Shown here in pieces: positions 7,789 to 64,000 of a DNA stretch of 64,000 nucleotides; position 1 is the first letter of the stretch; the number at the start of each line of letters is the position of its first letter. The DNA lies in the sequence record MN695334.1. One strand, written 5' to 3'. The position numbers were made by a program, and so were the translations under genes. The notes under the pieces were generated by a model. That model saw nothing but the letters and a program-made list of their open reading frames with translations. It searched no databases and was not told where the DNA came from.

Positions 7789-8982
7789 ATGTTAAATTAT
7801 CAATTTCCTACCATTGAAACTATCGGGGATGTATTACCTCACATTCAAGGTAGAACCGAGTTCCGAGTATTTCATAAAGATTGGTACTCTGTTGTCAACT
7901 ATGTAGTTGCCAACCCAGAAACTTTTGATTGGGATTATACTGATCCAATTGGGTCTGCTGTTAGGAGAGAGTGTCGTGGACTGATCTTTGATCATGTTGG
8001 CAATATCATTAGTAAAAGTTATCACAAGTTCTTCAACGTTGGTGAGAAGCCAGAAACTCAGAGCAACAAGATCAATCTCTATCAACCACATGTGATTCTG
8101 GAGAAGCTGGATGGTTCTATGATCCGTCCTATTCCTACTGGTCATGGTAAAGAGTTTCGTCTCGGTACTAAAGCTGGTATCACTGATGTTTCGATGAATG
8201 CAGAAGTATTCATTGCTGACAAGCCAGAGTACACTGAGTTCATTGAAGAATGCTTTAGAATTAACTGTACTGCAATTTTTGAATGGTGTTCTCGTAAGAA
8301 TCCTATCGTTATCGACTATCCAGAAGATAAACTGATTCTTACTGCTATCCGTGCAAATGATCATGGAGAATACATCAGATATCCTGCAATGAAGAGTCTT
8401 GCAGCAAGTTACACTATTCCAGTAGTAAAGGCAATCGATGGTCTTGCTATTCAAAACATTGATCTGTTCGTGAAGCAGATTCGTGAATGGGAAGACGCTG
8501 AGGGTGTAGTGATTCGTTTTGATGATGGCCACATGGTCAAAATTAAGGCAGATGATTATGTTCTTCGTCATAAGTCGAAGGATGCTATCAGCCAGGAAAA
8601 AAATGTGATCTCTACTATCGTCAACGACGAAGTTGATGATCTAATTCCTCTGCTGACCGAAGAGGACGCAAAAAGAATTCTAGCGTTTCAAAAAGTATTC
8701 TGGTACTGTGTTGATGAACTGGTAGTGGAACTTGAATCAGAGTATTCATTTGGATCTGCTCAGTTTCCCGAAAGAAAAGATTTTGCTGTAAATTTTGTTG
8801 GTCGAATGCTACAAAGCACTGAAAACAAGAAAAGGTATATACCAATCATGTATTCAATGAGGTCTGGCAAGACTGCTAGAGAAGCACTGGTAGCAATGAT
8901 TCAAAAATCAGTATCAAGTCAAACAAAAATTGATGAAAATCGCTGGTTGTTTGGAAATCTACAATGGAACCAGCCAGTCTAG
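7789..8982 (+). CDS. rnlA: T4-like RNA ligase 1
   Basis: RECRGLIFD, KFFNVGE, motif I EKLDGS, FEW and EGVV...MVKIKADDY. Confidence 0.92.
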   Translation: MLNYQFPTIETIGDVLPHIQGRTEFRVFHKDWYSVVNYVVANPETFDWDYTDPIGSAVRRECRGLIFDHVGNIISKSYHKFFNVGEKPETQSNKINLYQPHVILEKLDGSMIRPIPTGHGKEFRLGTKAGITDVSMNAEVFIADKPEYTEFIEECFRINCTAIFEWCSRKNPIVIDYPEDKLILTAIRANDHGEYIRYPAMKSLAASYTIPVVKAIDGLAIQNIDLFVKQIREWEDAEGVVIRFDDGHMVKIKADDYVLRHKSKDAISQEKNVISTIVNDEVDDLIPLLTEEDAKRILAFQKVFWYCVDELVVELESEYSFGSAQFPERKDFAVNFVGRMLQSTENKKRYIPIMYSMRSGKTAREALVAMIQKSVSSQTKIDENRWLFGNLQWNQPV

Positions 8983-9052
8983 TAACTGGCACACTCACAC
9001 CTAATTCCAGATCAATTCATGCTATACTTTAAAAGTAAAAGAGGACTATTCA

Positions 9053-9223
9053 ATGTTTGAAGCGATTTGTGTTGCTTATTATGAGGGAAGAGTATTGTGT
9101 GCTTTCGTTGATCGAGAGGAAGTAAAGAGGTATCTTAAAGAACATCATTCAACAATCGATCCGTTTGATGTCTCAATCAAATCTCAATTTCTTTCCGATT
9201 CAAACCCTAAATTTGGCCGATAA
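9053..9223 (+). CDS. Small hypothetical protein (56 aa), not in ORF track
   Basis: MFEAICVAYYEGRVLCAFVDREEV... directly downstream of the promoter at 8972-9028. Confidence 0.55.
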   Translation: MFEAICVAYYEGRVLCAFVDREEVKRYLKEHHSTIDPFDVSIKSQFLSDSNPKFGR

Positions 9224-9713
9224 TGAACAACGAACCCACTCTTGTAATGCTTTGTGNACCACCATGTTCTGGTAAATCCACTTATGTTCGCAAACTTTTA
9301 CTTGAAAACGACTACGGCTATAACAATCATGTAGTTTTATCCACAGATAACTACATTGAACGAATGGCTACCAAACTTAATAGCACTTATTCTCAAATCT
9401 TTGAAGAATATGTTGATGCTGCTTCTCGTGAACTTGATCTTGAGTTGAAGGAAGCTATTCGCGGAAATAAATCTATCATTTGGGATCAAACAAACCTTAC
9501 ATCAAAAGCACGTAAAAGAAAGCTGAATAAAATTCCAGCATATTACAGTAAAAGTGCTGCGTGGTTTTTGGCTTCTCTTGAGACTATTTTTCAAGAAATG
9601 AAAATCGCCCAGGAAAATATATTCCAAAGAGTATTCTTCGTAGGATGCATTCTCAGTTTGAACGACCTACCCTAGAGGAAGGCTTTGATTATGTAGTGGG
9701 TGAAACAAATTAA
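9223..9713 (+). pseudogene. AAA_33/polynucleotide-kinase-like P-loop kinase with apparent 1-nt deletion near 9592-9596 (real lesion or assembly error)
   Basis: Walker A CxPPCSGKST and WDQTNL; the canonical tail RNENRPGKYIPKSILRRMHSQFERPTLEEGFD continues in the shifted frame to TAA 9711-9713. Confidence 0.75.
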
Positions 9714-37226: not shown

Positions 37227-37958
37227 ATGTTTCAATTCGCAGAGGTCGGCGGTGCAGTTCGTGACAAGTTTCTAGGTGTTGAATCTAAAGATGTTGACTT
37301 TGTTGCGATTGCAGAAAATCCCGAAAACTTTGAAAGTGCGGAGCAAGCATTCGCCGCATTGGTGGGCTTTATTAAAGAAAGTGGTTTTAAAGTATTTCTG
37401 GAAACTCCACAATTCTTTACTGTACGGGCACAAGTTCCTGACAACCACCCTCTGAAGCAACGTACTAATGTTGCTGACTTTGTTCTGGCGCGGAAAGATG
37501 GCCCCAGTTCGGATGGTCGTCGGCCAGACTTTGTTCTGCCCGGTACTCTTTTTGATGATCTTCAGCGTAGGGATTTTACTGTTAACGCCATGGCAATTCT
37601 GAATGGTGAACTAATCGATCCTTTTGGGGGTTGTCAAGACCTAAAAGATAAAATATTGGATTTTGTGGGAGATTCTAGAGAACGAATTGCAGAGGATGGC
37701 CTAAGAGTTATGCGAGCACTTCGGTTTCATATCACCAAAGGATTCGACTTTGACTCTTTTGTTTGGGATGAATTAAATACCGAATTTGCGGCAGAAATGC
37801 TGATGAAAGTTTCTGTTGAGCGTATCAGGGAAGAACTTGATAAAATGTTTCTCCTTGATACTTTGAGTAGTATCAAATTGATTCAAGACCTGGAAGAATC
37901 TGTTCAAAAAGCAATCTTCCGCGATGGTCTTCGCTTGGCACCCACTCTTAAAAAGTAA
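37227..37958 (+). CDS. cca: Class II tRNA nucleotidyltransferase (CCA-adding / poly(A) polymerase family)
   Basis: VGGAVRD...KDVDF, DDLQRRDFTVNAM, DPFGG, EDGLRVMRALRF, VSVERIREEL; likely start ATG 37227. Confidence 0.88.
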   Translation: MFQFAEVGGAVRDKFLGVESKDVDFVAIAENPENFESAEQAFAALVGFIKESGFKVFLETPQFFTVRAQVPDNHPLKQRTNVADFVLARKDGPSSDGRRPDFVLPGTLFDDLQRRDFTVNAMAILNGELIDPFGGCQDLKDKILDFVGDSRERIAEDGLRVMRALRFHITKGFDFDSFVWDELNTEFAAEMLMKVSVERIREELDKMFLLDTLSSIKLIQDLEESVQKAIFRDGLRLAPTLKK

Positions 37959-54815: not shown

Positions 54816-54840
54816 GGAGCCAAATTTGGCTCCTTTTTTT
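54816..54840 (+). terminator. Rho-independent terminator
   Basis: Perfect palindrome GGAGCCAAATTTGGCTCC followed by T7; similar hairpins close other cassettes (~53669, 56465, 57052, 57988, 58612). Confidence 0.8.
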
Positions 54841-55043
54841 ATTGTTTATATCTTATAATTCTGCAGGCGAAGTGTCCTGTTTTGTATTATCACGCTTCTG
54901 CGCTTTCCTTGTTTGTTGAATACAGTCTAGCACGGCACAGGCGGCCCCGTGACCAACCCGACCAGTTTTCTAACTGTCCACCACCAGCCCCGGTTGCTAG
55001 TTTCTAGGTTGTATAATAATTATGTCGTCAAGGATTTTCTCTC

Positions 55044-55577
55044 GTGCTTACTCCTCTTGATTTTCGCAACAGTTTTAATAAAATTATGGCAGAAATTGAG
55101 GTGAAAGATCTTCCCGTCAACATTTTTATCCAACAAGAGAATTACAAAAAGATTCTTGCTGATGTAGATAAAACAGATACTTTCACTGAATATCAGTGGA
55201 GGAAGCTGGTCAGAGTTTGCCGGGCGATCAAAGAATATGAAACTCGGTTTTCAATGGACGATTGGCATTATAAAAAAGGTTGCGGAACAACACATTGTCT
55301 GGCTGGTTGGACACTTGCTCTAGAATATGGTGATATCGATATTGATGATATTAATGTGGATGATCGCAGGATGCTTGTTCCTGATGATTATATGAATGAT
55401 GAATATTTGAGCACACCCAAGACTGCTGAGTTTTTTCTATCAAAATATACTCGACCATTCTTTTTCTTCACGAATCGAGTTGATGGTGTTAATAAAGACG
55501 CAGAGAGGCTGGTCATGAAATACTTTATCGAGCCCATTCTTCAAGAAGACGATAAAGATAAGCTCAACAGCTTCTGA
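55044..55577 (+). CDS. CGTxHCxAGW family protein, copy 7
   Basis: CGTTHCLAGWT...LSKYTRPFF. Confidence 0.85.
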   Translation: MLTPLDFRNSFNKIMAEIEVKDLPVNIFIQQENYKKILADVDKTDTFTEYQWRKLVRVCRAIKEYETRFSMDDWHYKKGCGTTHCLAGWTLALEYGDIDIDDINVDDRRMLVPDDYMNDEYLSTPKTAEFFLSKYTRPFFFFTNRVDGVNKDAERLVMKYFIEPILQEDDKDKLNSF

Positions 55578-55663
55578 ACCACTTCAATAACTGTCTACCG
55601 GTAATCACGGTTGCCGGTTTCATTTTCTAGAATAACCAAGTCAACCACGTTTCTTTCGAAAAA

Positions 55664-56095
55664 ATGCTCATCAATCCTCAAGCCATGGAAAATCTGACCA
55701 AAAATGTAGATTGGGCCGAAACGATTCAAGAACTGAATAAGAATAATCCTGCATCTTATGAATCTCTTCTTAATCTTCTGTTTTCTTCAGTTCAACCAGT
55801 TTACAAAATCGAAATCGAACAAGACTACAATCCAGTAAAAACTATTGATTCTCGGTTGATTCGAACTTACGACTTCGTCGTAACTGCTGTTAAAAATACC
55901 GTGAATGGTAGTTGTACCGATAACTCCAAGATCTCCGCAATTAAGGCTCTTCGTTCTGAGTTTGATGTGAATCTCAAGAATGCGAAAGACTGCGTTGAGA
56001 AAATGATGCAAATGTATAAAAATAATCCTGACTGTAGTTTTATGTTTTATTATAAAACCGGTGGTGATCTCGACATTAGCTGCTATGTCCAGTAA
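55664..56095 (+). CDS. Protein with ribosomal bL12 C-terminal-like motif
   Basis: KISAIKALRSEFDVNLKNAKDCVE vs bL12 consensus KIxVIKxVRxxTGLGLKEAKDLVE. Confidence 0.6.
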   Translation: MLINPQAMENLTKNVDWAETIQELNKNNPASYESLLNLLFSSVQPVYKIEIEQDYNPVKTIDSRLIRTYDFVVTAVKNTVNGSCTDNSKISAIKALRSEFDVNLKNAKDCVEKMMQMYKNNPDCSFMFYYKTGGDLDISCYVQ

Positions 56096-56269
56096 AAGCC
56101 TCTAGAAGGCCCTTCTACGCTGAATCATGGGCCATCCTGTCTAGGGTGGCTTTTTCATGCCTTCTAGAGGCTTCTAGAGGCCATGTGCCAATTCTGAAAG
56201 TGCACACAAATCACCTGGCTTCACCGTCAACATGCTGTAGAATAAGGGAGTCCCAGACAAATTCGGATC

Positions 56270-58594
56270 ATGAGTAACAACCTTTATCTGGAAAATGGAT
56301 ACGCTAATCGTCGAGAGTATCTTGATTCTCTTCGAGAAGATTATGGTGATCTGGTTGATGTTTTGATTAGTGTTCTTCCTGCATCGGAAGATTTTGATGG
56401 GTTGATTACTGAACTGGAAGATGCAATGGAGTCGGGATTATATGATGATTTGATCTGATTCTTTACCCCGAGTTTCTTATACTCGGGGTTCGCACTATTC
56501 TTTATAGTGTAACATAACTGCAGGAGAAGTTTCTTATTTTTTATCATAGAGCTTTCCGGCTCTCTTTTTCGTTTGTTGAATATAGTATAATACAGCATAA
56601 GCGGCAGCCGTGAGCACCGTGGGACAGTTCGCTAACTGGCACAAGGACAACCGAGGTTCAGGTTTTCGTGTTCTATACTAATAAAGTCCCAAAGACAACT
56701 GATCATGGCTTACAAGGATTATCGTCCTGAAACTCGCAGCCTGTTCAAGAGACTCAAAGAGCATGATTTCTCTCTGAGCGCCGTCAACAATGGCGAAGAA
56801 TGGGTGAAACTCAGTGATGTCGGTGATAGGGAGTTTCTGGAAGAAACTGTTGCTGCTGATGATGCAGTTGTCACGGTTCGTTATACCGATGGCAAGCGTT
56901 ACAAACTGTACCTGGTTTTCGGAAACTGTCCAGGTGAATTGGTTTGTGATTGTTCGTCTTTTGATCCACTAAGTGTGGTTGTTGATCAACATGCTGATAA
57001 GTGGGAAAATCGCAAACAACCCACACGATGAATTAAAATCAAATAATAAACATCCCCGAAAGGGGATTTATTTTGTATTCTTTATAGTATTATTAAAGTG
57101 CAGGTAAAGTGTCCTGTTTTATGTTATCACGCTTCTGCGCTTTCCTTGTTTGTTGAATACAGTCTAGCACGCCGGAAGCCCAACTGCGAGTCACCGTGGC
57201 CAGTTTTCTGACTGTCCACCAGCAGCCACGGTCGGTGGTTTCGGTGCTCTATGATATCGGAGTAGCAAACAACCGGCCATGAAAAAGTTTTCTGTTACGC
57301 TTCGTGAACATGAAGAATACGGCGAAATTGGCCTAGTTGTAGATACTCAACGGGATTACTTCGAGCCTGCTACATCTGGATTGCAGTGTGCTCACGATAT
57401 AATCGAGCACACCGTAAAACCTCATTATGATGGATATATTGACGAACTAATGGCTCTGGGTGGAGTTATTGCTGGAAGAATTACCTATGGTTGGTCTTTT
57501 AAGTATGGCACAATCAATCTGGATGATATTAAATCAGACATCTCTTCTCTGGCTACTTCTGCTTATCACGAGCAGTGCGATTTCGTGAATGATGAATGCA
57601 AGAATACACTGAAAGATAAAGATTTCGTTCAATCTATCCGAAACATGGTTCGTGATGGATTAATTGAAGCAATGGGAGAATATAATGACGACTACCTTAA
57701 TCCTGTCGTGAATGAGTCCGACTTTCAACAATTAGTGGAAGAGAAGTATAACATAAATCGCATTGTTGCATGGATTTGTAAGGGTTATCAGACATACAAA
57801 AAGAGATTCGCTAACATACAAGAATATACGATTCAACATATTTTCACTCAGATTGAGCGAGTGTGCGATAAATTTATCAAGACTGGAAAAGAGTATCAGC
57901 AAGCTACTTTGTGTGTTGATTTTACCAACGGTCGTGTATATTTACAAGAAGAATATGAAGATGATTATTGATAACAATCAATATCAAAGACTCTGAGATT
58001 GTTATGCTCAGAGTTTTTTTGTATTCTTTATAATGTAACATAACTGCAGGAGAAGTGTCCTGTTTTATGTAATCACGCTTCTGCGCTTTCCTTGTTTGTT
58101 GAATACAGTCTAGCATAGCCACAAGGGAAACGGGGGAATTCATTGATCAGCATTGCTTATCAATTCAATTTCGTTTTATGTAGCAGTTGATACCGTTACA
58201 TGCTTGCGGCATTCAAACCAGTCGGTTATGCTTGGGGAGTCCAAAACAAAAAAGCGTCATGACTTTCACTCTTCCTTCCGTACTGGTTTCGGATACGATT
58301 GAACAGCTTATGAGCCACTTGGCTACAGCTGAGAAAGCAAAAAAAGAAGCTGAGGCAGAATATGAACGGCTGCGTAAAGAATTGAAGGAAATTATGATTG
58401 CTGGGAAAGTAACTACACAAAAAACTGTTTGGGGCACCGTTACTCTATGTGAAGGCCGCAAAAGTGTAGCTTACTCTCAAGCAATTATATTGCGAGAGGC
58501 TAAGTTGAAGGCGGCAAAAGAGATCGAAGAACTAAAAGGTAAGGCTAAAGTCACGCACGGTGAAAAATCAATTCGTGCAACTTGGGTGAAGTGA
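56270..58594 (+). other. Single-gene early cassettes (56270-56458, 56705-57031, 57279-57971, 58259-58594)
   Basis: Each ORF has its own upstream promoter and downstream hairpin. Confidence 0.7.
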
Positions 58595-58865
58595 AATATA
58601 ACTAAAATGACTGAATGGCTGTGGGTGTTATACTCACAGCCATTCTTGTTTGTTATTGTTTATATTATTAAAGGGCAGGAGAAGTGTCCTGATTTATATG
58701 ATTGCGGTCTTCCGCTTTCTTGAATACAGTCTAGCACAGCACAAGCGGCAGCGGCGAGGCATCGTAACAATCTGTAACAATAGAAATTTTATAGTGTCTT
58801 AAGATTTGGACCCGCTGAACCGGTTTCCGATAGTGTAGAATATGAGGGCACCAAACATCAATCCG

Positions 58866-59270: not shown

Positions 59271-59336
59271 TGTAAACAATCGTGGCCCACAGTATAATGT
59301 ACTTGGGCCACACAATCGTTTTTTTCTCTATTAATT

Positions 59337-59708
59337 ATGAAAGGCATTCTCTGGTTAGCACTCAATTCACCCACTTTCCCGGTTGAGTGTATCTACAATC
59401 CCGTACAACATCTGCACGTCACACTTGAATACGGGGTGAATTACGAGAGTTGTGACTTTTTAATTGGCCGTAAAGTAGAAGTAATTGCAGTTGCTAACTG
59501 TTGGAATGATAAGGTACAAGCACTTCAAGTCAATCTTCCTCCTGAGTATGCGGCTATCTGCAACAATGTGCACCCTCATATGACTATCTCAACCGCTGAT
59601 AATGTTCGCCCGGTTGAGTCTAACAATATGTTGAGTGGTGAATATAATGAACTCACAGTACAAATCGTGATGCAGACTACCGTAGATTTTATTACGTTGA
59701 TGAAGTGA
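59337..59708 (+). CDS. 2H phosphoesterase
   Basis: Two HxT motifs: HLHVTLEYG and HPHMTIST...RPVESNNML. Confidence 0.75.
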   Translation: MKGILWLALNSPTFPVECIYNPVQHLHVTLEYGVNYESCDFLIGRKVEVIAVANCWNDKVQALQVNLPPEYAAICNNVHPHMTISTADNVRPVESNNMLSGEYNELTVQIVMQTTVDFITLMK

Positions 59709-60033
59709 GTGTGAGCAATTGTATTTGATTCTTTATGCTTATGTCAGTGTATTTGAGGGTTTCGTATAATTATTTCAATGTGTAACAAGCAGTTGACAGT
59801 AGGCCCGTTCCATGTTATGATGTAAGCCTGAGCCTAAGCGGTTCATAAGGGGATTGACCCTTTTAAAATAATATTCGACTTTTATCATAAGAATTCCCCT
59901 CATTTTATAAAGAACTAATTTTTTATAAAAAACCGATTTCAAAAATCGAAATCATATTTCCGAATTTCAAAAAAATCCGCGCCGGCAAAAATGCCCCAAA
60001 TAGGTCGCATATATAGAGGGAGTTTCATAAAAA

Positions 60034-60225
60034 TTGAAATTGACTAAAAAATATCACATATACATCAACGGATATTGTCATTATCCGAATCTTGATGAAG
60101 AGATATTTCATAAAACATGGAATAGACTCATNGACAATAATCCACATTTTCTACATGAGCAAATTTCTTATGAAGAAGTGATTGACAATAAAGAAGAATA
60201 TTCTTTAGAAGGAAAAATTTATTAA
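60034..60225 (+). CDS. Conserved cyanophage small protein
   Basis: KYHIY...NLDEEIF; similar to untracked ORF 61641-61796. Confidence 0.55.
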   Translation: MKLTKKYHIYINGYCHYPNLDEEIFHKTWNRLXDNNPHFLHEQISYEEVIDNKEEYSLEGKIY

Positions 60226-60245
60226 ACATTTATTAGGAAATAAAA

Positions 60246-61130
60246 ATGGCAAAAGGTTTTAGTGTGAAGGCGAATAATCCCACTCCTCAGGATGAACCAT
60301 GGGATTATGGGAAAATCAAAGAAAAGATGAGAGGTAAAAAAATCGTTTTTTGTTTACCTGGTAGAAATTGCTCTTATACTTTCTTAAAGAGTTTTGTTCA
60401 ACTTTGTTTTGATCTAGTACAAAATCAAATGAGTATTCAGATCTCTCAAGATTATAGTTCCATGGTAAACTTTGCTAGATGTAAAGTTCTAGGAGCAAAC
60501 GTAACAAAAGGCCCATGGCAAGATCCTTGGCAAGGACAACTTGAATATGACTATCAGTTATGGATTGATAATGACATTGTTTTCAATTCTGAAAAGTTTT
60601 GGCAATTGTGTGATCTAATGGTAAAAGATTCTCCAGTTGAAAAAGAATTTGATGTGAAAGAATATCCGCTATGGGATATTTCTGATGAAGAATTATACAA
60701 TATGAATAAATCAGACTTTACTGTAAGAAGAGAGAGAATTCGTCGGTTGAATAAACTGGCAAATCCAATCGTAAGTGGTTGGTATTCTACTGAAGACGGT
60801 AGAACTACTTCCTGTGCTCATTGGTTAGAGGCTGATGACTTCATTAAAAATGGTGGAGTTATGAATCACGAAACCATAGAAAGTATCAGTAAGAGAAATA
60901 AACCTTTCACGGTTGATTATGTGGGTGGTGGTTGGATGATGGTAGCCAAAGGAGTTTTTGAATGTATGGAATATCCTTGGTGGGGACCAAAGCTACAGAC
61001 GTTTGAAAATGGTATTCAAGACTTTTGTGGAGAAGACGTTTCATTCTGTCTAGATGCAAAAGACCTAGGCATTGATATTATTGTAGATCCTCGTGTTCGT
61101 GTTGGTCATGAAAAAACAAGAATTCTGTGA
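60246..61130 (+). CDS. Conserved cyanomyovirus GT-A-like glycosyltransferase
   Basis: MAKGFSVKA...DYQLWIDNDIVF (DxD)...GEDVSFC...RVGHEK. Confidence 0.75.
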   Translation: MAKGFSVKANNPTPQDEPWDYGKIKEKMRGKKIVFCLPGRNCSYTFLKSFVQLCFDLVQNQMSIQISQDYSSMVNFARCKVLGANVTKGPWQDPWQGQLEYDYQLWIDNDIVFNSEKFWQLCDLMVKDSPVEKEFDVKEYPLWDISDEELYNMNKSDFTVRRERIRRLNKLANPIVSGWYSTEDGRTTSCAHWLEADDFIKNGGVMNHETIESISKRNKPFTVDYVGGGWMMVAKGVFECMEYPWWGPKLQTFENGIQDFCGEDVSFCLDAKDLGIDIIVDPRVRVGHEKTRIL

Positions 61131-61644
61131 TTTCGGCGCTCTGCGCGAAATTAAAAACTGGCCTGGGTATTTCCTTCATATTAGTGAAACTGGAATTGAC
61201 ATTTATTCCACTCGGCATAAACCAAACTCATATTATAAAATGAAGCTTCAGGTGAATACAGGGGGATACCTGATAGTGGGGCTAACTCGTACGGATACAA
61301 CCCAAAAAAAAGTGAGACTTCATCGCTTGATTGCGGAAACTCTAATTCCTAATCCACATAATCTAGAATGTGTAGACCATATTGATGGAAATAAATTAAA
61401 TAATTTTCCATCAAATCTCCAATGGATTACCAATAGAGATAACACATTAAAAGCCAATGCAATGGGTTTATGGGGAACTCCTCCCAAAAAGTATCAAATT
61501 CATCATGAAGATGGAAGAGTTCAAATCATAGAAAATGCACGTAAATTTGCAAGAGATCATGGCTACGATAATTCGAGCATTATTTCGATTGCCAATGGCC
61601 GTCGAAATCGACACTACGATATTATAAAAGTAATTACATTATGA
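61108..61644 (+). CDS. HNH homing endonuclease
   Basis: RLHRLIAETLIPNPHNLECVDHIDGNKLNNFPSNLQWIT; C-terminal NUMOD1-like segment; start overlaps GT 3' end. Confidence 0.85.
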   Translation: MKKQEFCDFGALREIKNWPGYFLHISETGIDIYSTRHKPNSYYKMKLQVNTGGYLIVGLTRTDTTQKKVRLHRLIAETLIPNPHNLECVDHIDGNKLNNFPSNLQWITNRDNTLKANAMGLWGTPPKKYQIHHEDGRVQIIENARKFARDHGYDNSSIISIANGRRNRHYDIIKVITL

Positions 61645-61796
61645 TAAATATCCTATATGATGGAAGAATCATTTATCACAACATAAATGAGGAAGAAATT
61701 TCACAAATACTTCTTGAATTGGCATCCGACGAAACTATTGACCAAACNAAAATTGAAATTGAGGAAATTGAATACGGAAGATCAGGTAAGAATTGA
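61641..61796 (+). CDS. Small acidic hypothetical protein (51 aa), not in ORF track
   Basis: MINILYDGRIIYHNINEEEISQILLEL...; ATGA overlap with the HNH stop. Confidence 0.55.
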   Translation: MINILYDGRIIYHNINEEEISQILLELASDETIDQXKIEIEEIEYGRSGKN

Positions 61797-62217
61797 TATA
61801 GNAGAATGGTTAATCAGAGTCTCTGAAGTTCGTCCCGAACTCGGAGGCTTTTCTATATGTCCTTTTGCCAAAAAAGCAAAATATAAGATATTGAATATCG
61901 ATATTGATAAAATTTATCCTATTGAAAACTATGACGTTATCATTTATGTGATACAAGAAGAGAACTTAGATATCATTAATTCATGGACTCAATTTTATAA
62001 TCAAAAATATTCGGAATGGCTTTTCTTTGAGGACTGTGCTTCTTATGATACATTCATAAATGGCGTTCAGACAAATAATGACCTACACAATTTAATTCTA
62101 GGGCAACCTAAAGAAGAACTTAAAAAATTTAGAGAAATATTGAAGAAGACGAATTACTACTCCTATTGGTCTGAAGAATACTATAACGAAATTATGAGTT
62201 CGGCTTCCGAATCATAG
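61768..62217 (+). CDS. Conserved cyanophage hypothetical protein (start uncertain)
   Basis: EWLIRVSEVRPELGGFSICPFAK; probable TTG start near 61768. Confidence 0.55.
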   Translation: MNTEDQVRIDIXEWLIRVSEVRPELGGFSICPFAKKAKYKILNIDIDKIYPIENYDVIIYVIQEENLDIINSWTQFYNQKYSEWLFFEDCASYDTFINGVQTNNDLHNLILGQPKEELKKFREILKKTNYYSYWSEEYYNEIMSSASES

Positions 62218-62584
62218 GATGAGGTGCGATATCTTTAGTCTTGTTATCTTGAAATCCATGATTATTATACCAAGTATTCAACTTTTTTTTATATCCTCTT
62301 TCTGCTACTGGTTTTACACTAACGGGTAGTTTATTTTTGTCGGCATATCTTGTGATGCCCTTAACAAATCTTGATCCCTTTTTCTTTCCTCTCTCTTTCT
62401 TATTTACATTAATTAGACCAATATATACATGCTCTTTTTGTTTTCCGTCTTGAGTGGCTGGACGGTGCTGTACATTAAAATTGGAACCTGGATTTTTCCT
62501 ATCCCAATTTCTTGTGATGGTCTTCATTACCTCATCATGTGACTTTTTCTCGGCTTCTGTAATAAACTGGGAATATGTTTTCAT
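62192..62584 (-). CDS. Capsid-targeted GNAT-fold-like protein
   Basis: Leader MKTYSQFITE; IGLINVNKKERGKKKGS and WYNNHGF resemble GNAT motifs A and B. Confidence 0.6.
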   Translation of the reverse strand: MKTYSQFITEAEKKSHDEVMKTITRNWDRKNPGSNFNVQHRPATQDGKQKEHVYIGLINVNKKERGKKKGSRFVKGITRYADKNKLPVSVKPVAERGYKKKLNTWYNNHGFQDNKTKDIAPHPMIRKPNS

Positions 62585-62793
62585 GACTCAGATGTTCTTT
62601 TAACACTATAGATATTTGCCCCATACTCTTGATTCAATTTATCGGCTTTTCTACCAGCACTTTTTCTGGTTTTATATGAAGATTTATTTACTCTAACTGC
62701 TTCAGATGATCCAACTTTTGTCCCATCAATAGTTGTGTTTCCGCGATAAATGTCAAAGGGCGCCTCGGAGATGAATTCTCTATATGTCTTCAT
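62581..62793 (-). CDS. Capsid-targeted small basic internal protein
   Basis: Leader MKTYREFISE; late promoter ATAAATA on the minus strand at 62824-62818. Confidence 0.65.
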   Translation of the reverse strand: MKTYREFISEAPFDIYRGNTTIDGTKVGSSEAVRVNKSSYKTRKSAGRKADKLNQEYGANIYSVKRTSES

Positions 62794-62896
62794 TTCTCTT
62801 GTAGTATCACATAAAAGTATTTATGAATTCCTAAATATCCTCGGTGATTTAGAAACCACCAAAAAAAAGTTTCTCTTAACCCATTAAGGAGACAAA

Positions 62897-63088
62897 ATGA
62901 CTGATCGTAACGTAAAATTTATGCAAGAAACCTGGGGAACTACCAGTCTTGTGACTGACTATTCTCACCCAAAAAAGAAAATGCTTCGGGAAGTTTCAAC
63001 TGAAAAATTCCTAGATGAAAAGCTGAATGAGGAGACTGAAATTTTTGATAATTGGGATTATGGACTTGAATCTTTTCACGCTAAATAA
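62897..63088 (+). CDS. Conserved cyanophage hypothetical protein upstream of gp25
   Basis: FMQETWGTTSLVTDY...KMLREV. Confidence 0.55.
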   Translation: MTDRNVKFMQETWGTTSLVTDYSHPKKKMLREVSTEKFLDEKLNEETEIFDNWDYGLESFHAK

Positions 63089-63109
63089 ATAATAAAACAT
63101 TAATTTAAA

Positions 63110-63502
63110 ATGGCGATTAGGTCCAGTCGAGGTTTCAAAGATATTAGTGCAACATTTCAAATTAATCCTCTAAATCGGGATGCGATTGCAATTAAAAATG
63201 AGACCGCAATCTCTAGGGCCGTTCGTAATCTGATTTTTACTATTGTAGGTGAGGTTCCATATTCTGATGTTGGAAGTTCGGTAAACAAACTTCTTTTTGA
63301 GAATATGGATTCTCTCACCTCATCAGTATTAGAATCAGAAATACAAAATACATTAAGACTTGAACCTAGAATTAGAGTTATAGATGTTAAAGTATTTCCG
63401 AATTATGAAAATAATGAGTTCAATGTTACTCTCACATATAATATCGTTGGAATCGATGTTCCGGCTCAACAATTAACCCTAGCACTCGTTTCGGCAAGAT
63501 AA
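63110..63502 (+). CDS. gp25: Baseplate wedge subunit gp25
   Basis: FKDISATFQINP...AISRAVRNLIFT...EPRIRVIDV; CTAAATAAATA late promoter upstream. Confidence 0.9.
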   Translation: MAIRSSRGFKDISATFQINPLNRDAIAIKNETAISRAVRNLIFTIVGEVPYSDVGSSVNKLLFENMDSLTSSVLESEIQNTLRLEPRIRVIDVKVFPNYENNEFNVTLTYNIVGIDVPAQQLTLALVSAR

Positions 63503-64000
63503 TGTCTCTTACTCAATTTACAAATTTAGATTTTGACCAAATTAAGGAATCTATACGAGATTATTTAAGAGCTAGTAGTGATTTTACTGACTATGATTTT
63601 GAGGGATCNAATTTTACNGTCTTAATCAATACTCTTGCATACAATACCTACATTAATTCCTATAATGCCACTGCAATTTGTAATGAGGTATTTTTAGATA
63701 GTGCTACTCTACGTGAAAANGTAATCTTNAGAGCAAAAGAAATAGGTTATTTGCCTAGATCCAGAACCGCAGCCAGAGCAAATATTTCTTTTTTTGTAGA
63801 TACCACAAATTTAACCACAAATCCACTAACACTAACTCTAAAAAGAGGAACGGTTGCTGTTACTTCGGCCCGATTTAACTCAACTAATTATACATTTTCA
63901 ATTTTAGAAGATATTACAGTACCTGTAGTAGATGGTTTGGCATTTTTTGACAATATTACTGTATATGAAGGCAACTATATTGTTCAAAATTACACTTTTA
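63502..64000 (+). CDS. gp6: Baseplate wedge protein gp6, 3' truncated by window edge
   Basis: MSLTQFTNLDFDQIKESIRDYL...FTDYDFEGSN...LAYNTY...NEVFLDSATLRE; open to the window end, so absent from the ORF track. Confidence 0.9.
   Translation, partial: MSLTQFTNLDFDQIKESIRDYLRASSDFTDYDFEGXNFXVLINTLAYNTYINSYNATAICNEVFLDSATLREXVIXRAKEIGYLPRSRTAARANISFFVDTTNLTTNPLTLTLKRGTVAVTSARFNSTNYTFSILEDITVPVVDGLAFFDNITVYEGNYIVQNYTF

Follow-up and report, generated by a model that had tools for sequence, protein, structure and literature searches.

What is known of the CNPase/Trl1-CPD branch of the 2H phosphoesterase superfamily comes from eukaryotic tRNA splicing and myelin CNPase. Acb1 (the T4 gp57B family; FBB1), a small phage 2H enzyme, cleaves the 3'-5' bonds of cyclic oligonucleotides, an activity that we know of in no enzyme of the CNPase/Trl1 clade. 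Every characterised member of the clade opens a 2',3'-cyclic phosphate, leaving a 2'-phosphate next to a 3'-OH (PMC7145591, PMC4643303). In the Candida CPD, the phosphate site comprises Asn763 (-4), His767, Thr769 and Asn782 (+15), and contacts to the terminal nucleoside are imputed to His687 (+5 of the first His) and to Tyr647 in strand beta1; the essential Arg of ThpR is absent from the Trl1 clade (PMC7145591). CNPase holds its substrate with Y168, F235 (+5) and V321 (+12 of the second His) (PMC4643303).

The DNA analysed here (the window, 64,000 nucleotides) corresponds to bases 62001-126000 of record MN695334, the 244,930-bp genome of Synechococcus phage B3 (Kyanoviridae); a compared stretch of 1.2 kb was 100% identical. 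The window contains a short gene whose product is annotated in that record as 'hypothetical protein':

59337..59708, plus strand: gp254 (b3_0254), a 123-aa open reading frame encoding a minimal 2H phosphoesterase of the CNPase/Trl1-CPD clade

The initial annotation described this frame as a stand-alone 2H phosphoesterase with two HxT motifs, a description upheld by sequence, family conservation and fold. The motifs, H27-V-T29 and H81-M-T83, are the conserved, paired H-x-T motifs that mark the 2H superfamily and lie within its spacing of about 50-90 residues. In an alignment of 99 family members, H27 never varies and T29, H81, T83, S85 and S95 each reach a conservation of 90% or more, so that the HxT motifs are not chance tripeptides. 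Both motifs occur in 161 of the 171 proteins collected, a set with a handful each of short fragments and long fusion proteins. In the close family, H25, H27, N57, C75, N77, P80, H81, T83, S85 and the string V-R-P-V-E-S-N (90-96) are invariant or nearly so.

A Pfam match, the ranking of fold matches, an N-x3-HxT...VESN signature and the offsets of the substrate-contacting residues together establish gp254 as a member of the CNPase/Trl1-CPD branch. The protein scores 34 bits against PF08302 (tRNA_lig_CPD, fungal tRNA ligase; cut-off 23, E 2.8e-8), in an alignment that spans only residues 53-103 and model positions 170-221 of 250. PF08302 is also found in all 22 close homologues (121-158 aa) retrieved from a word-indexed database. 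An exhaustive profile search recovered 685 clusters (50% identity, E up to 1e-3), nearly all of them stand-alone proteins of 115-140 aa, and about 75-78% of the protein-atlas clusters with this small domain (hereafter mini-CPD) are viral. The motifs of the clade appear in gp254 as N77 (-4 of H81), N96 (+15, within VESN at 93-96) and Y32 (+5 of H27), the last of which is F in most family members; N77 and N96 are invariant in the close-family alignment, and W6 in strand 1 is likewise invariant. HMMER aligns the N77, N96 and Y32 positions to Asn763, Asn782 and His687 of Candida Trl1. This protein is also the best, though weak (E 0.06), match of the broader family profile among PDB sequences, with HVTL falling on HVTL and N-x3-H-I-T-I-x10-VESN on the same string; the close-family profile had no match among PDB sequences. 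Within PHROGs, gp254 matched only phrog_36523 (unknown function, E 0.043) and no named Acb1 family, and it had no match in NCBIfam.

The predicted structure points in the same direction. The AlphaFold2 model of gp254 (pLDDT 95, pTM 0.86) has only three short helices, and the two HxT motifs begin strands E27-35 and E81-86. In an exhaustive search of 48,161 PDB representatives, the catalytic domain of mouse CNPase stood alone at the top, with Acb1 next (Z 7.9). CNPase superposes on the model (VIA-align) with Z 12.7-13.1 and an rmsd of 2.2 Å over 121 of the 123 residues, and the Candida albicans Trl1 KIN-CPD structure (6u05), taken from a re-examined Foldseek list, with Z 11.8 and 2.7 Å over 120 residues. 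Goldfish RICH follows at Z 10.6, and Acb1 (7t26/7t27) at Z 7.9-8.0 with an rmsd of 3.8 Å over about 110 residues. Lower matches include rotavirus VP3 (Z 7.4), a Deinococcus CPDase (7.3), the Arabidopsis Appr>p CPDase 1fsi (7.0-7.2) and the ThpR/LigT-type structures 1vgj, 2d4g and 4qak (6-7); the top 50 PDB fold matches (Z >5) are all 2H proteins except three topoisomerase III chains (Z 5.1-5.3). Among predicted viral structures (BFVD), the best matches were Trl1-like 'RNA ligase' proteins of giant viruses, and Acb1 entries reached a TM of 0.43-0.46. For the choice between an Acb1-like enzyme and an RNA cyclic phosphodiesterase, the initial annotation had proposed, among other checks, a Foldseek comparison with Acb1 and Trl1 CPD. 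That comparison places Trl1 CPD (Z 11.8) above Acb1 (Z 8.0), and the CNPase/Trl1 fold and VESN signature favor the second choice, while membership in the Acb1 family itself was rejected on the fold ranking (Z 8.0 versus 13.1) and the PHROGs and NCBIfam searches.

Residues N77, H81, T83 and N96 of gp254 are those of the Candida phosphate site at identical spacing, both HxT motifs are shared with Trl1 CPD, and in each protein family an aromatic residue lies five positions after the first His. The architecture differs: gp254 is a stand-alone protein of 123 aa, whereas the Trl1 CPD is the ~190-aa C-terminal domain of a ligase-kinase-CPD polypeptide, most of its helical elements are absent from gp254, and where it has Gln and Glu (positions -4 and -2 relative to the first His), the gp254 family has V/A and an invariant His. 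Trl1 is eukaryotic (fungal, plant), whereas the gp254 family is viral or bacterial, and the presumed ligase partner of gp254 is of the T4 Rnl1 type, in a phage without Tpt1. For CNPase, Y168, F235 and V321 correspond by offset to W6, Y32 and V93, but identity is about 15%, the Arg307 position is not conserved, and the vertebrate catalytic domain (for example 2xmi and 2ydd), of about 215 aa, has extra helices and a beta5-alpha7 loop and is joined to a membrane anchor and, on its N-terminal side, to a PNK-like domain. At only about 60% the size of any characterised catalytic domain of the CNPase/Trl1 clade, gp254 has neither the full-size domain (about 190-215 aa, with helical lobes) nor the linkage to a kinase module. 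The near-complete superposition on CNPase and the motif alignment with Trl1 predict that the two HxT motifs form one active site.

Other enzymes resemble gp254 in part. Acb1 is likewise a small stand-alone phage 2H protein with two HxT motifs and the superfamily fold, but it differs in motif context as well as in its 3.8 Å rmsd. The ThpR/LigT enzymes (PF02834/PF13563) are stand-alone prokaryotic 2H proteins that turn RNA>p into RNA 2'-phosphate, but they form a separate 2H branch, and PF13563 had no match in B3. The phosphatase of T4 Pnkp (HAD, PF25109) has the task proposed here for gp254, readying cut tRNA 3' ends for Rnl1, but performs it with an unrelated fold, as a DxDxT acyl-phosphatase that removes the phosphate fully.

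Sequenced phage isolates with a mini-CPD number only three: B3, phage B23, whose homologue is 100% identical to gp254, and Aphanizomenon phage vB_AphaS-CL131, whose gp125 shares 34% identity; tblastn against 50,697 phage genomes returned no match beyond these. Our literature search found no paper describing this phage family. The region around gp254 is hypervariable and composed of shuffled single-gene cassettes: relative to the CPD gene, the gp253 homologue is on the upstream side in B3 and on the downstream side in a relative with 73% identity, in another the two are 1.4 kb apart, and no conserved neighbor or operon partner of the mini-CPD was found in the phage contigs or cellular loci examined. 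Of 301 genomes sampled from a single bacterial phylum, which we infer to be cyanobacterial from neighbors such as DUF4079, only 4 have a cellular homologue, in ordinary chromosomal contexts. These homologues are surrounded by housekeeping rather than RNA-repair genes. A 1056-aa fusion is a singleton, and a reading of the family as virion-delivered fusions was rejected.

The intergenic region between gp253 and gp254 contains two features:

59282..59311, plus strand: GC-rich hairpin of 13 pairs with one bulge and a 3-nt loop
59293..59298, plus strand: TATAAT hexamer within the hairpin stem; a promoter role is not supported

The initial annotation placed the hexamer in the hairpin loop and suggested that gp254 has its own promoter inside the preceding terminator. 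The hexamer and the hairpin arms (GTGGCCCA at 59282-59289 and TGGGCCAC at 59304-59311) lie where it put them, and the hairpin itself is confirmed (MFE -21 kcal/mol, z -3.5, equalled by 0 of 200 shuffles), followed after a 7-nt spacer by a run of seven Ts (59319-59325). The supposed 14-nt loop, however, pairs with itself (AGUAU/GUACU) and leaves a loop of 3 nt, so TATAAT is located in the stem. The promoter suggestion was rejected as well, since a sigma-70 consensus scan called no promoter at the hexamer, promoter-like sites across the region occur at chance level (18 found versus 16.8 expected), and TATAAT is not kept upstream of homologues in other phages, where GC-rich hairpins of unrelated sequence precede T-rich tracts. 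The hairpin is probably a terminator or attenuator of the preceding cassette.

Several genes of phage B3 putatively encode RNA-repair enzymes:

7789..8982, plus strand: gp129, T4 Rnl1-type tRNA repair ligase (PF09511 8e-33, T4_Rnl1_C 2e-8, phrog_562 3e-72)
9223..9675, plus strand: gp131, 150-aa P-loop kinase (AAA_33) matching the kinase part of the phrog_505 polynucleotide kinase
37227..37958, plus strand: gp211, short CCA-adding enzyme with a PolyA_pol head domain and without an HD domain
Record 56071-56856, just outside the window: gp93, calcineurin-like metallophosphoesterase

The kinase-only PNK noted in the initial annotation is real: gp131 lies two genes downstream of the Rnl1 ligase gp129, in an arrangement that is kept in unrelated phages. 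The ligase carries the tRNA-specific C-domain of T4 Rnl1, and B3 has about twenty tRNA genes. Searches of the whole B3 record found no PNK3P, HAD_PNKP, HD or Tpt1 domain and no fused 5' kinase/3' phosphatase Pnkp, and the sole HAD domain in B3 is fused to a sugar nucleotidyltransferase; two HAD_SAK searches had no match anywhere, controls included, and are hence uninformative. The 2'-phosphatase of B3 could possibly be gp93; some enzymes of the metallophosphoesterase superfamily heal RNA ends that bear a cyclic phosphate (PMC1920235). Neither gp131 nor gp93 has sequence relatives in the PDB.

The following phages and contigs relate the mini-CPD to this gene set:

B3, 245 kb, complete: mini-CPD, Rnl1 and short AAA_33 kinase present; no Pnkp-type phosphatase; gp93
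G004, G005 and G006 (IMG/VR), 190-277 kb, 67-98% complete: mini-CPD, Rnl1 and AAA_33 kinase present; stand-alone HAD_PNKP phosphatase about 4 kb from the kinase
CL131, 113 kb, complete: mini-CPD present; Rnl1 and kinase absent; PNK3P 2 kb from the mini-CPD
Cr30 and BUCT-ZZ01, complete: mini-CPD absent; Rnl1-kinase pair present; PNK3P and HAD_PNKP searched for, none found
DSS3P8, complete: mini-CPD absent; Rnl1-kinase pair present; stand-alone HAD_PNKP
Eleven contigs with a B3-like gp25 (five at 47-100%, one of them a complete 250-kb genome): mini-CPD and Rnl1 absent

Gene co-occurrence, like the fold, family membership and motif conservation of gp254, is a direct observation: Rnl1 is present in 4 of 5 mini-CPD carriers (at least 67% complete) versus 0 of 5 gp25 controls (at least 47% complete; one-sided Fisher p about 0.02, hand calculation). 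The Rnl1 proteins of G004-G006 share only about 23-27% identity with that of B3. These three contigs are probably one lineage, which reduces the effective sample to about three lineages, and at that size the association between mini-CPD and Rnl1 is suggestive.

The reading we prefer, in which we place about as much belief as doubt, is that gp254 is an active stand-alone 2',3'-cyclic phosphodiesterase that carries out the first 3'-healing step on host-cut tRNA or mRNA. The targets would be tRNAs and mRNAs, of phage or host origin, that metal-independent RNases (anticodon nucleases, HEPN or toxin RNases) have cut. Binding of the cyclic phosphate at the terminal nucleotide would fall to H27 and H81 along with T29 and T83, while W6, Y32 and V93 would pack against the sugar and base of that nucleotide; hydrolysis would yield a 2'-phosphate beside a free 3'-OH. 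Next, a different phosphomonoesterase would strip the 2'-phosphate (HAD_PNKP in G004-G006, PNK3P in CL131, possibly gp93 in B3), the 5'-OH would receive a phosphate from gp131, and gp129 would seal the ends. Such a sequence of four steps is the simplest model consistent with the gene sets. We infer the activity of gp254, its product, its RNA substrate and its partnership with the repair enzymes. Two healing steps are proposed because T4 Rnl1 does not seal 2'-phosphate ends: in a direct test, a 2'-P/3'-OH substrate was not ligated (PMC12440814). The phosphatase domain of T4 Pnkp has RNA 2'-phosphatase activity, and a Pnkp-type phosphatase could also heal cyclic ends alone (PMC3592404). Such a scheme, combining a CPD with a separate phosphatase, a kinase and a ligase, has been proposed for jumbo phages on the basis of comparative genomics (PMC7824862).

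The initial annotation suggested that gp254 supplies the 3'-healing activity missing from the kinase-only PNK. A contribution to healing is retained in our reading, but sufficiency is not, since a 2'-phosphate would be left and the mini-CPD coexists with a phosphatase in other genomes. Treating gp254 as a plain stand-in for the missing Pnkp phosphatase was likewise rejected as a general rule, as G004-G006 have both enzymes and T4 Rnl1 rejects 2'-P ends. Because those three contigs already carry a Pnkp-type phosphatase that could heal cyclic ends by itself, a CPD would not be obligatory there.

Some observations speak against an RNA-repair role. Within B3, gp254 lies 50 kb from both the Rnl1 gene and the kinase gene and has no conserved neighbor. 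Rnl1-kinase pairs exist without a mini-CPD in Cr30, DSS3P8 and BUCT-ZZ01, and the cellular homologues are not found among RNA-repair genes. The ORFs flanking the Rnl1-kinase pair in B3, Cr30, DSS3P8 and BUCT-ZZ01 showed no paired HxT motifs, mutual similarity or Pfam match, and the idea of a hidden 2H enzyme beside the pair was rejected on these grounds.

Alternatively, gp254 may erase a defense second messenger (the cyclic di- or trinucleotides of CBASS, the cyclic oligoadenylates of type III CRISPR or another cyclic-phosphate signal), serving an Acb1-like function without belonging to the Acb1 family. We consider this unlikely, though the versatility of 2H chemistry leaves some room for it. 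With 123 aa, gp254 is near the size of Acb1 (about 140-150 aa) and is likewise a stand-alone phage 2H protein, Acb1 is the second-best family in the exhaustive fold search (Z 7.9), and the gene sits in the kind of hypervariable cassette region that is typical of counter-defense genes. In addition, the pared-down, open active site could take larger ligands, and phage 2H enzymes have been proposed for both roles (PMC7824862). The model is, however, nearer to CNPase and Trl1 CPD (Z 13.1 and 11.8; rmsd 2.2-2.7 Å) than to Acb1, the clade-specific N...HxT...VESN signature is present, and no named Acb1 family is matched in PHROGs or NCBIfam. The characterised members of the clade act on 2',3'-cyclic phosphates rather than on 3'-5' bonds (PMC7145591, PMC4643303), and the mini-CPD co-occurs with RNA-repair genes.

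An improbable reading is that gp254 has no role at RNA ends and turns free 2',3'-cNMPs into 2'-NMPs, in nucleotide salvage or the removal of a stress signal. Genes of nucleotide metabolism are common in cyanophages, a general feature with which such an enzyme would be consistent. The conserved contacts of gp254 span one nucleoside only, and two of the three cellular homologues examined lie beside a nucleotide-biosynthesis gene (purH or CTP synthase), but with n = 2 such neighbor hints are weak. CNPase, the closest structure, has been assayed on free 2',3'-cNMPs (PMC4643303), yet both Trl1 CPD and CNP work on RNA>p ends in yeast in vivo, where mammalian CNP rescues a trl1 allele whose CPD is dead (PMC7145591). 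Moreover, 2'-NMPs are no direct salvage intermediate and would require a further nucleotidase, and the genes found together with the mini-CPD (Rnl1, kinase and phosphatase) are more in keeping with a substrate at RNA ends.

It is highly unlikely that gp254 hydrolyses Appr>p. Some 2H enzymes do process this compound, among them the Arabidopsis CPDase 1fsi, and B3 carries an NAD+ salvage cassette (NadM-Nudix, NADAR and NAMPT); 2H and Macro domains have also been tied to the Appr>p step (PMC7824862). However, searches of B3 and the other carriers turned up no Tpt1/KptA, the source of Appr>p, the fold match to 1fsi is distant (Z 7.0-7.2), and gp254 lies about 77 kb from the NAD genes. We give equally little credence to a yeast-type repair in which the B3 Rnl1 accepts the 2'-phosphate left by gp254 and the junction phosphate stays in place in a phage and host without Tpt1; if true, the 2'-OH on which transesterifying anticodon nucleases depend would be blocked and the mended tRNA would resist re-cutting, so that a phosphate would play the part that Hen1 methylation plays in bacterial Pnkp/Hen1 repair.

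The gp254 family indicates that the CNPase/Trl1-CPD branch also exists as a stand-alone protein of ~120 aa, in hundreds of mostly viral, uncharacterised clusters. If active, gp254 would be among the smallest 2H catalysts and would offer a minimal scaffold for studies of mechanism. Activity would also caution against labelling every small phage 2H protein 'Acb1-like'. For phage B3 itself, gp254 points to a further 2'-phosphatase or to an unusual ligase specificity. An active gp254 would lend substance to a modular, two-step healing of RNA 3' ends in phages, so far a proposal from comparative genomics only (PMC7824862).

The Rnl1 ligase (gp129) and kinase-only PNK (gp131), the proposed RNA-repair partners of the mini-CPD gp254, are kept as a unit in Synechococcus phage B3, Caulobacter phage Cr30, Roseobacter phage DSS3P8 and Synechococcus phage BUCT-ZZ01, with 33-41% identity across the pairs and unrelated flanking ORFs:

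B3 window, 7789-9675, Rnl1 ligase and kinase-only PNK
L024, 2803-4486, the same pair
L025, 2739-4495, the same pair
L026, 2788-4468, the same pair

In DSS3P8, the Pnkp phosphatase is split off as a stand-alone gene 3 kb upstream of the pair. Searches for PNK3P and HAD_PNKP revealed no recognizable 3'-end healing enzyme in Cr30 or BUCT-ZZ01. For B3, just one candidate was found that could take a 2'- or 3'-phosphate off RNA ends, and it lies about 5.9 kb ahead of the window start:

MN695334 56071-56856, gp93, calcineurin-like metallophosphoesterase (phrog_1649)

The gp254 gene (59337-59708, + strand) lies in a region of cassettes. Related phages differ in how the gp253 and gp254 cassettes are ordered, and consecutive single-gene cassettes just upstream are each preceded by a copy of an intergenic repeat module with the core CAGGAGAAGTGTCCTG plus TTGAATACAGTCTAGCAC; the module is not present in the 66-nt gap before gp254 itself. 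GC content is 0.41 at 56-60 kb of the window versus 0.33 to each side.

54831-58749, intergenic repeat module of 77-105 nt, copies starting at 54831, 56488, 57068, 58014 and 58643
61093-61644, gp257, HNH homing-endonuclease gene overlapping the 3' end of gp256

In near and distant relatives alike, the gene for the conserved 294-aa gp256 (phrog_1574, function unknown) and the CPD gene are separated by no more than ~3 kb. Scattered ambiguous bases, confined to the window's final 4 kb (~60030-64000), introduce X into the translations of gp255, gp258, the ORF at 61687-62217 and gp6.

Cellular homologues of the mini-CPD are rare: in one phylum, 4 of the 301 genomes sampled carry one. Three were placed among housekeeping genes, with no defense or RNA-repair locus around any of them:

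L034, 6001-6357, neighbors purH and a LysR regulator
L128, 7644-8039, neighbors alpha-amylase and an M48 peptidase
L129, 7875-8396, neighbors GH38 and CTP synthase

The domain may also occur in a fused form, on a Logan contig of a T4-like cyanophage:

L039, 5485-8655, ORF of 1056 aa, mini-CPD at the N-terminus fused to a long protein that carries a GH19 lysozyme-like domain

This fusion is a singleton cluster, and it could be an artifact of assembly or gene calling. The ORF has baseplate genes on one side and the gene for a gp5-like tail lysozyme on the other, a setting that hints at a CPD delivered with the virion. Beyond phages, Env polyproteins of two fish retroviruses, walleye epidermal hyperplasia virus and walleye dermal sarcoma virus (Q9WHI8 and A4GTG3), are among the best predicted-structure matches to gp254 in BFVD, which suggests that these proteins contain a CNPase-like 2H domain.
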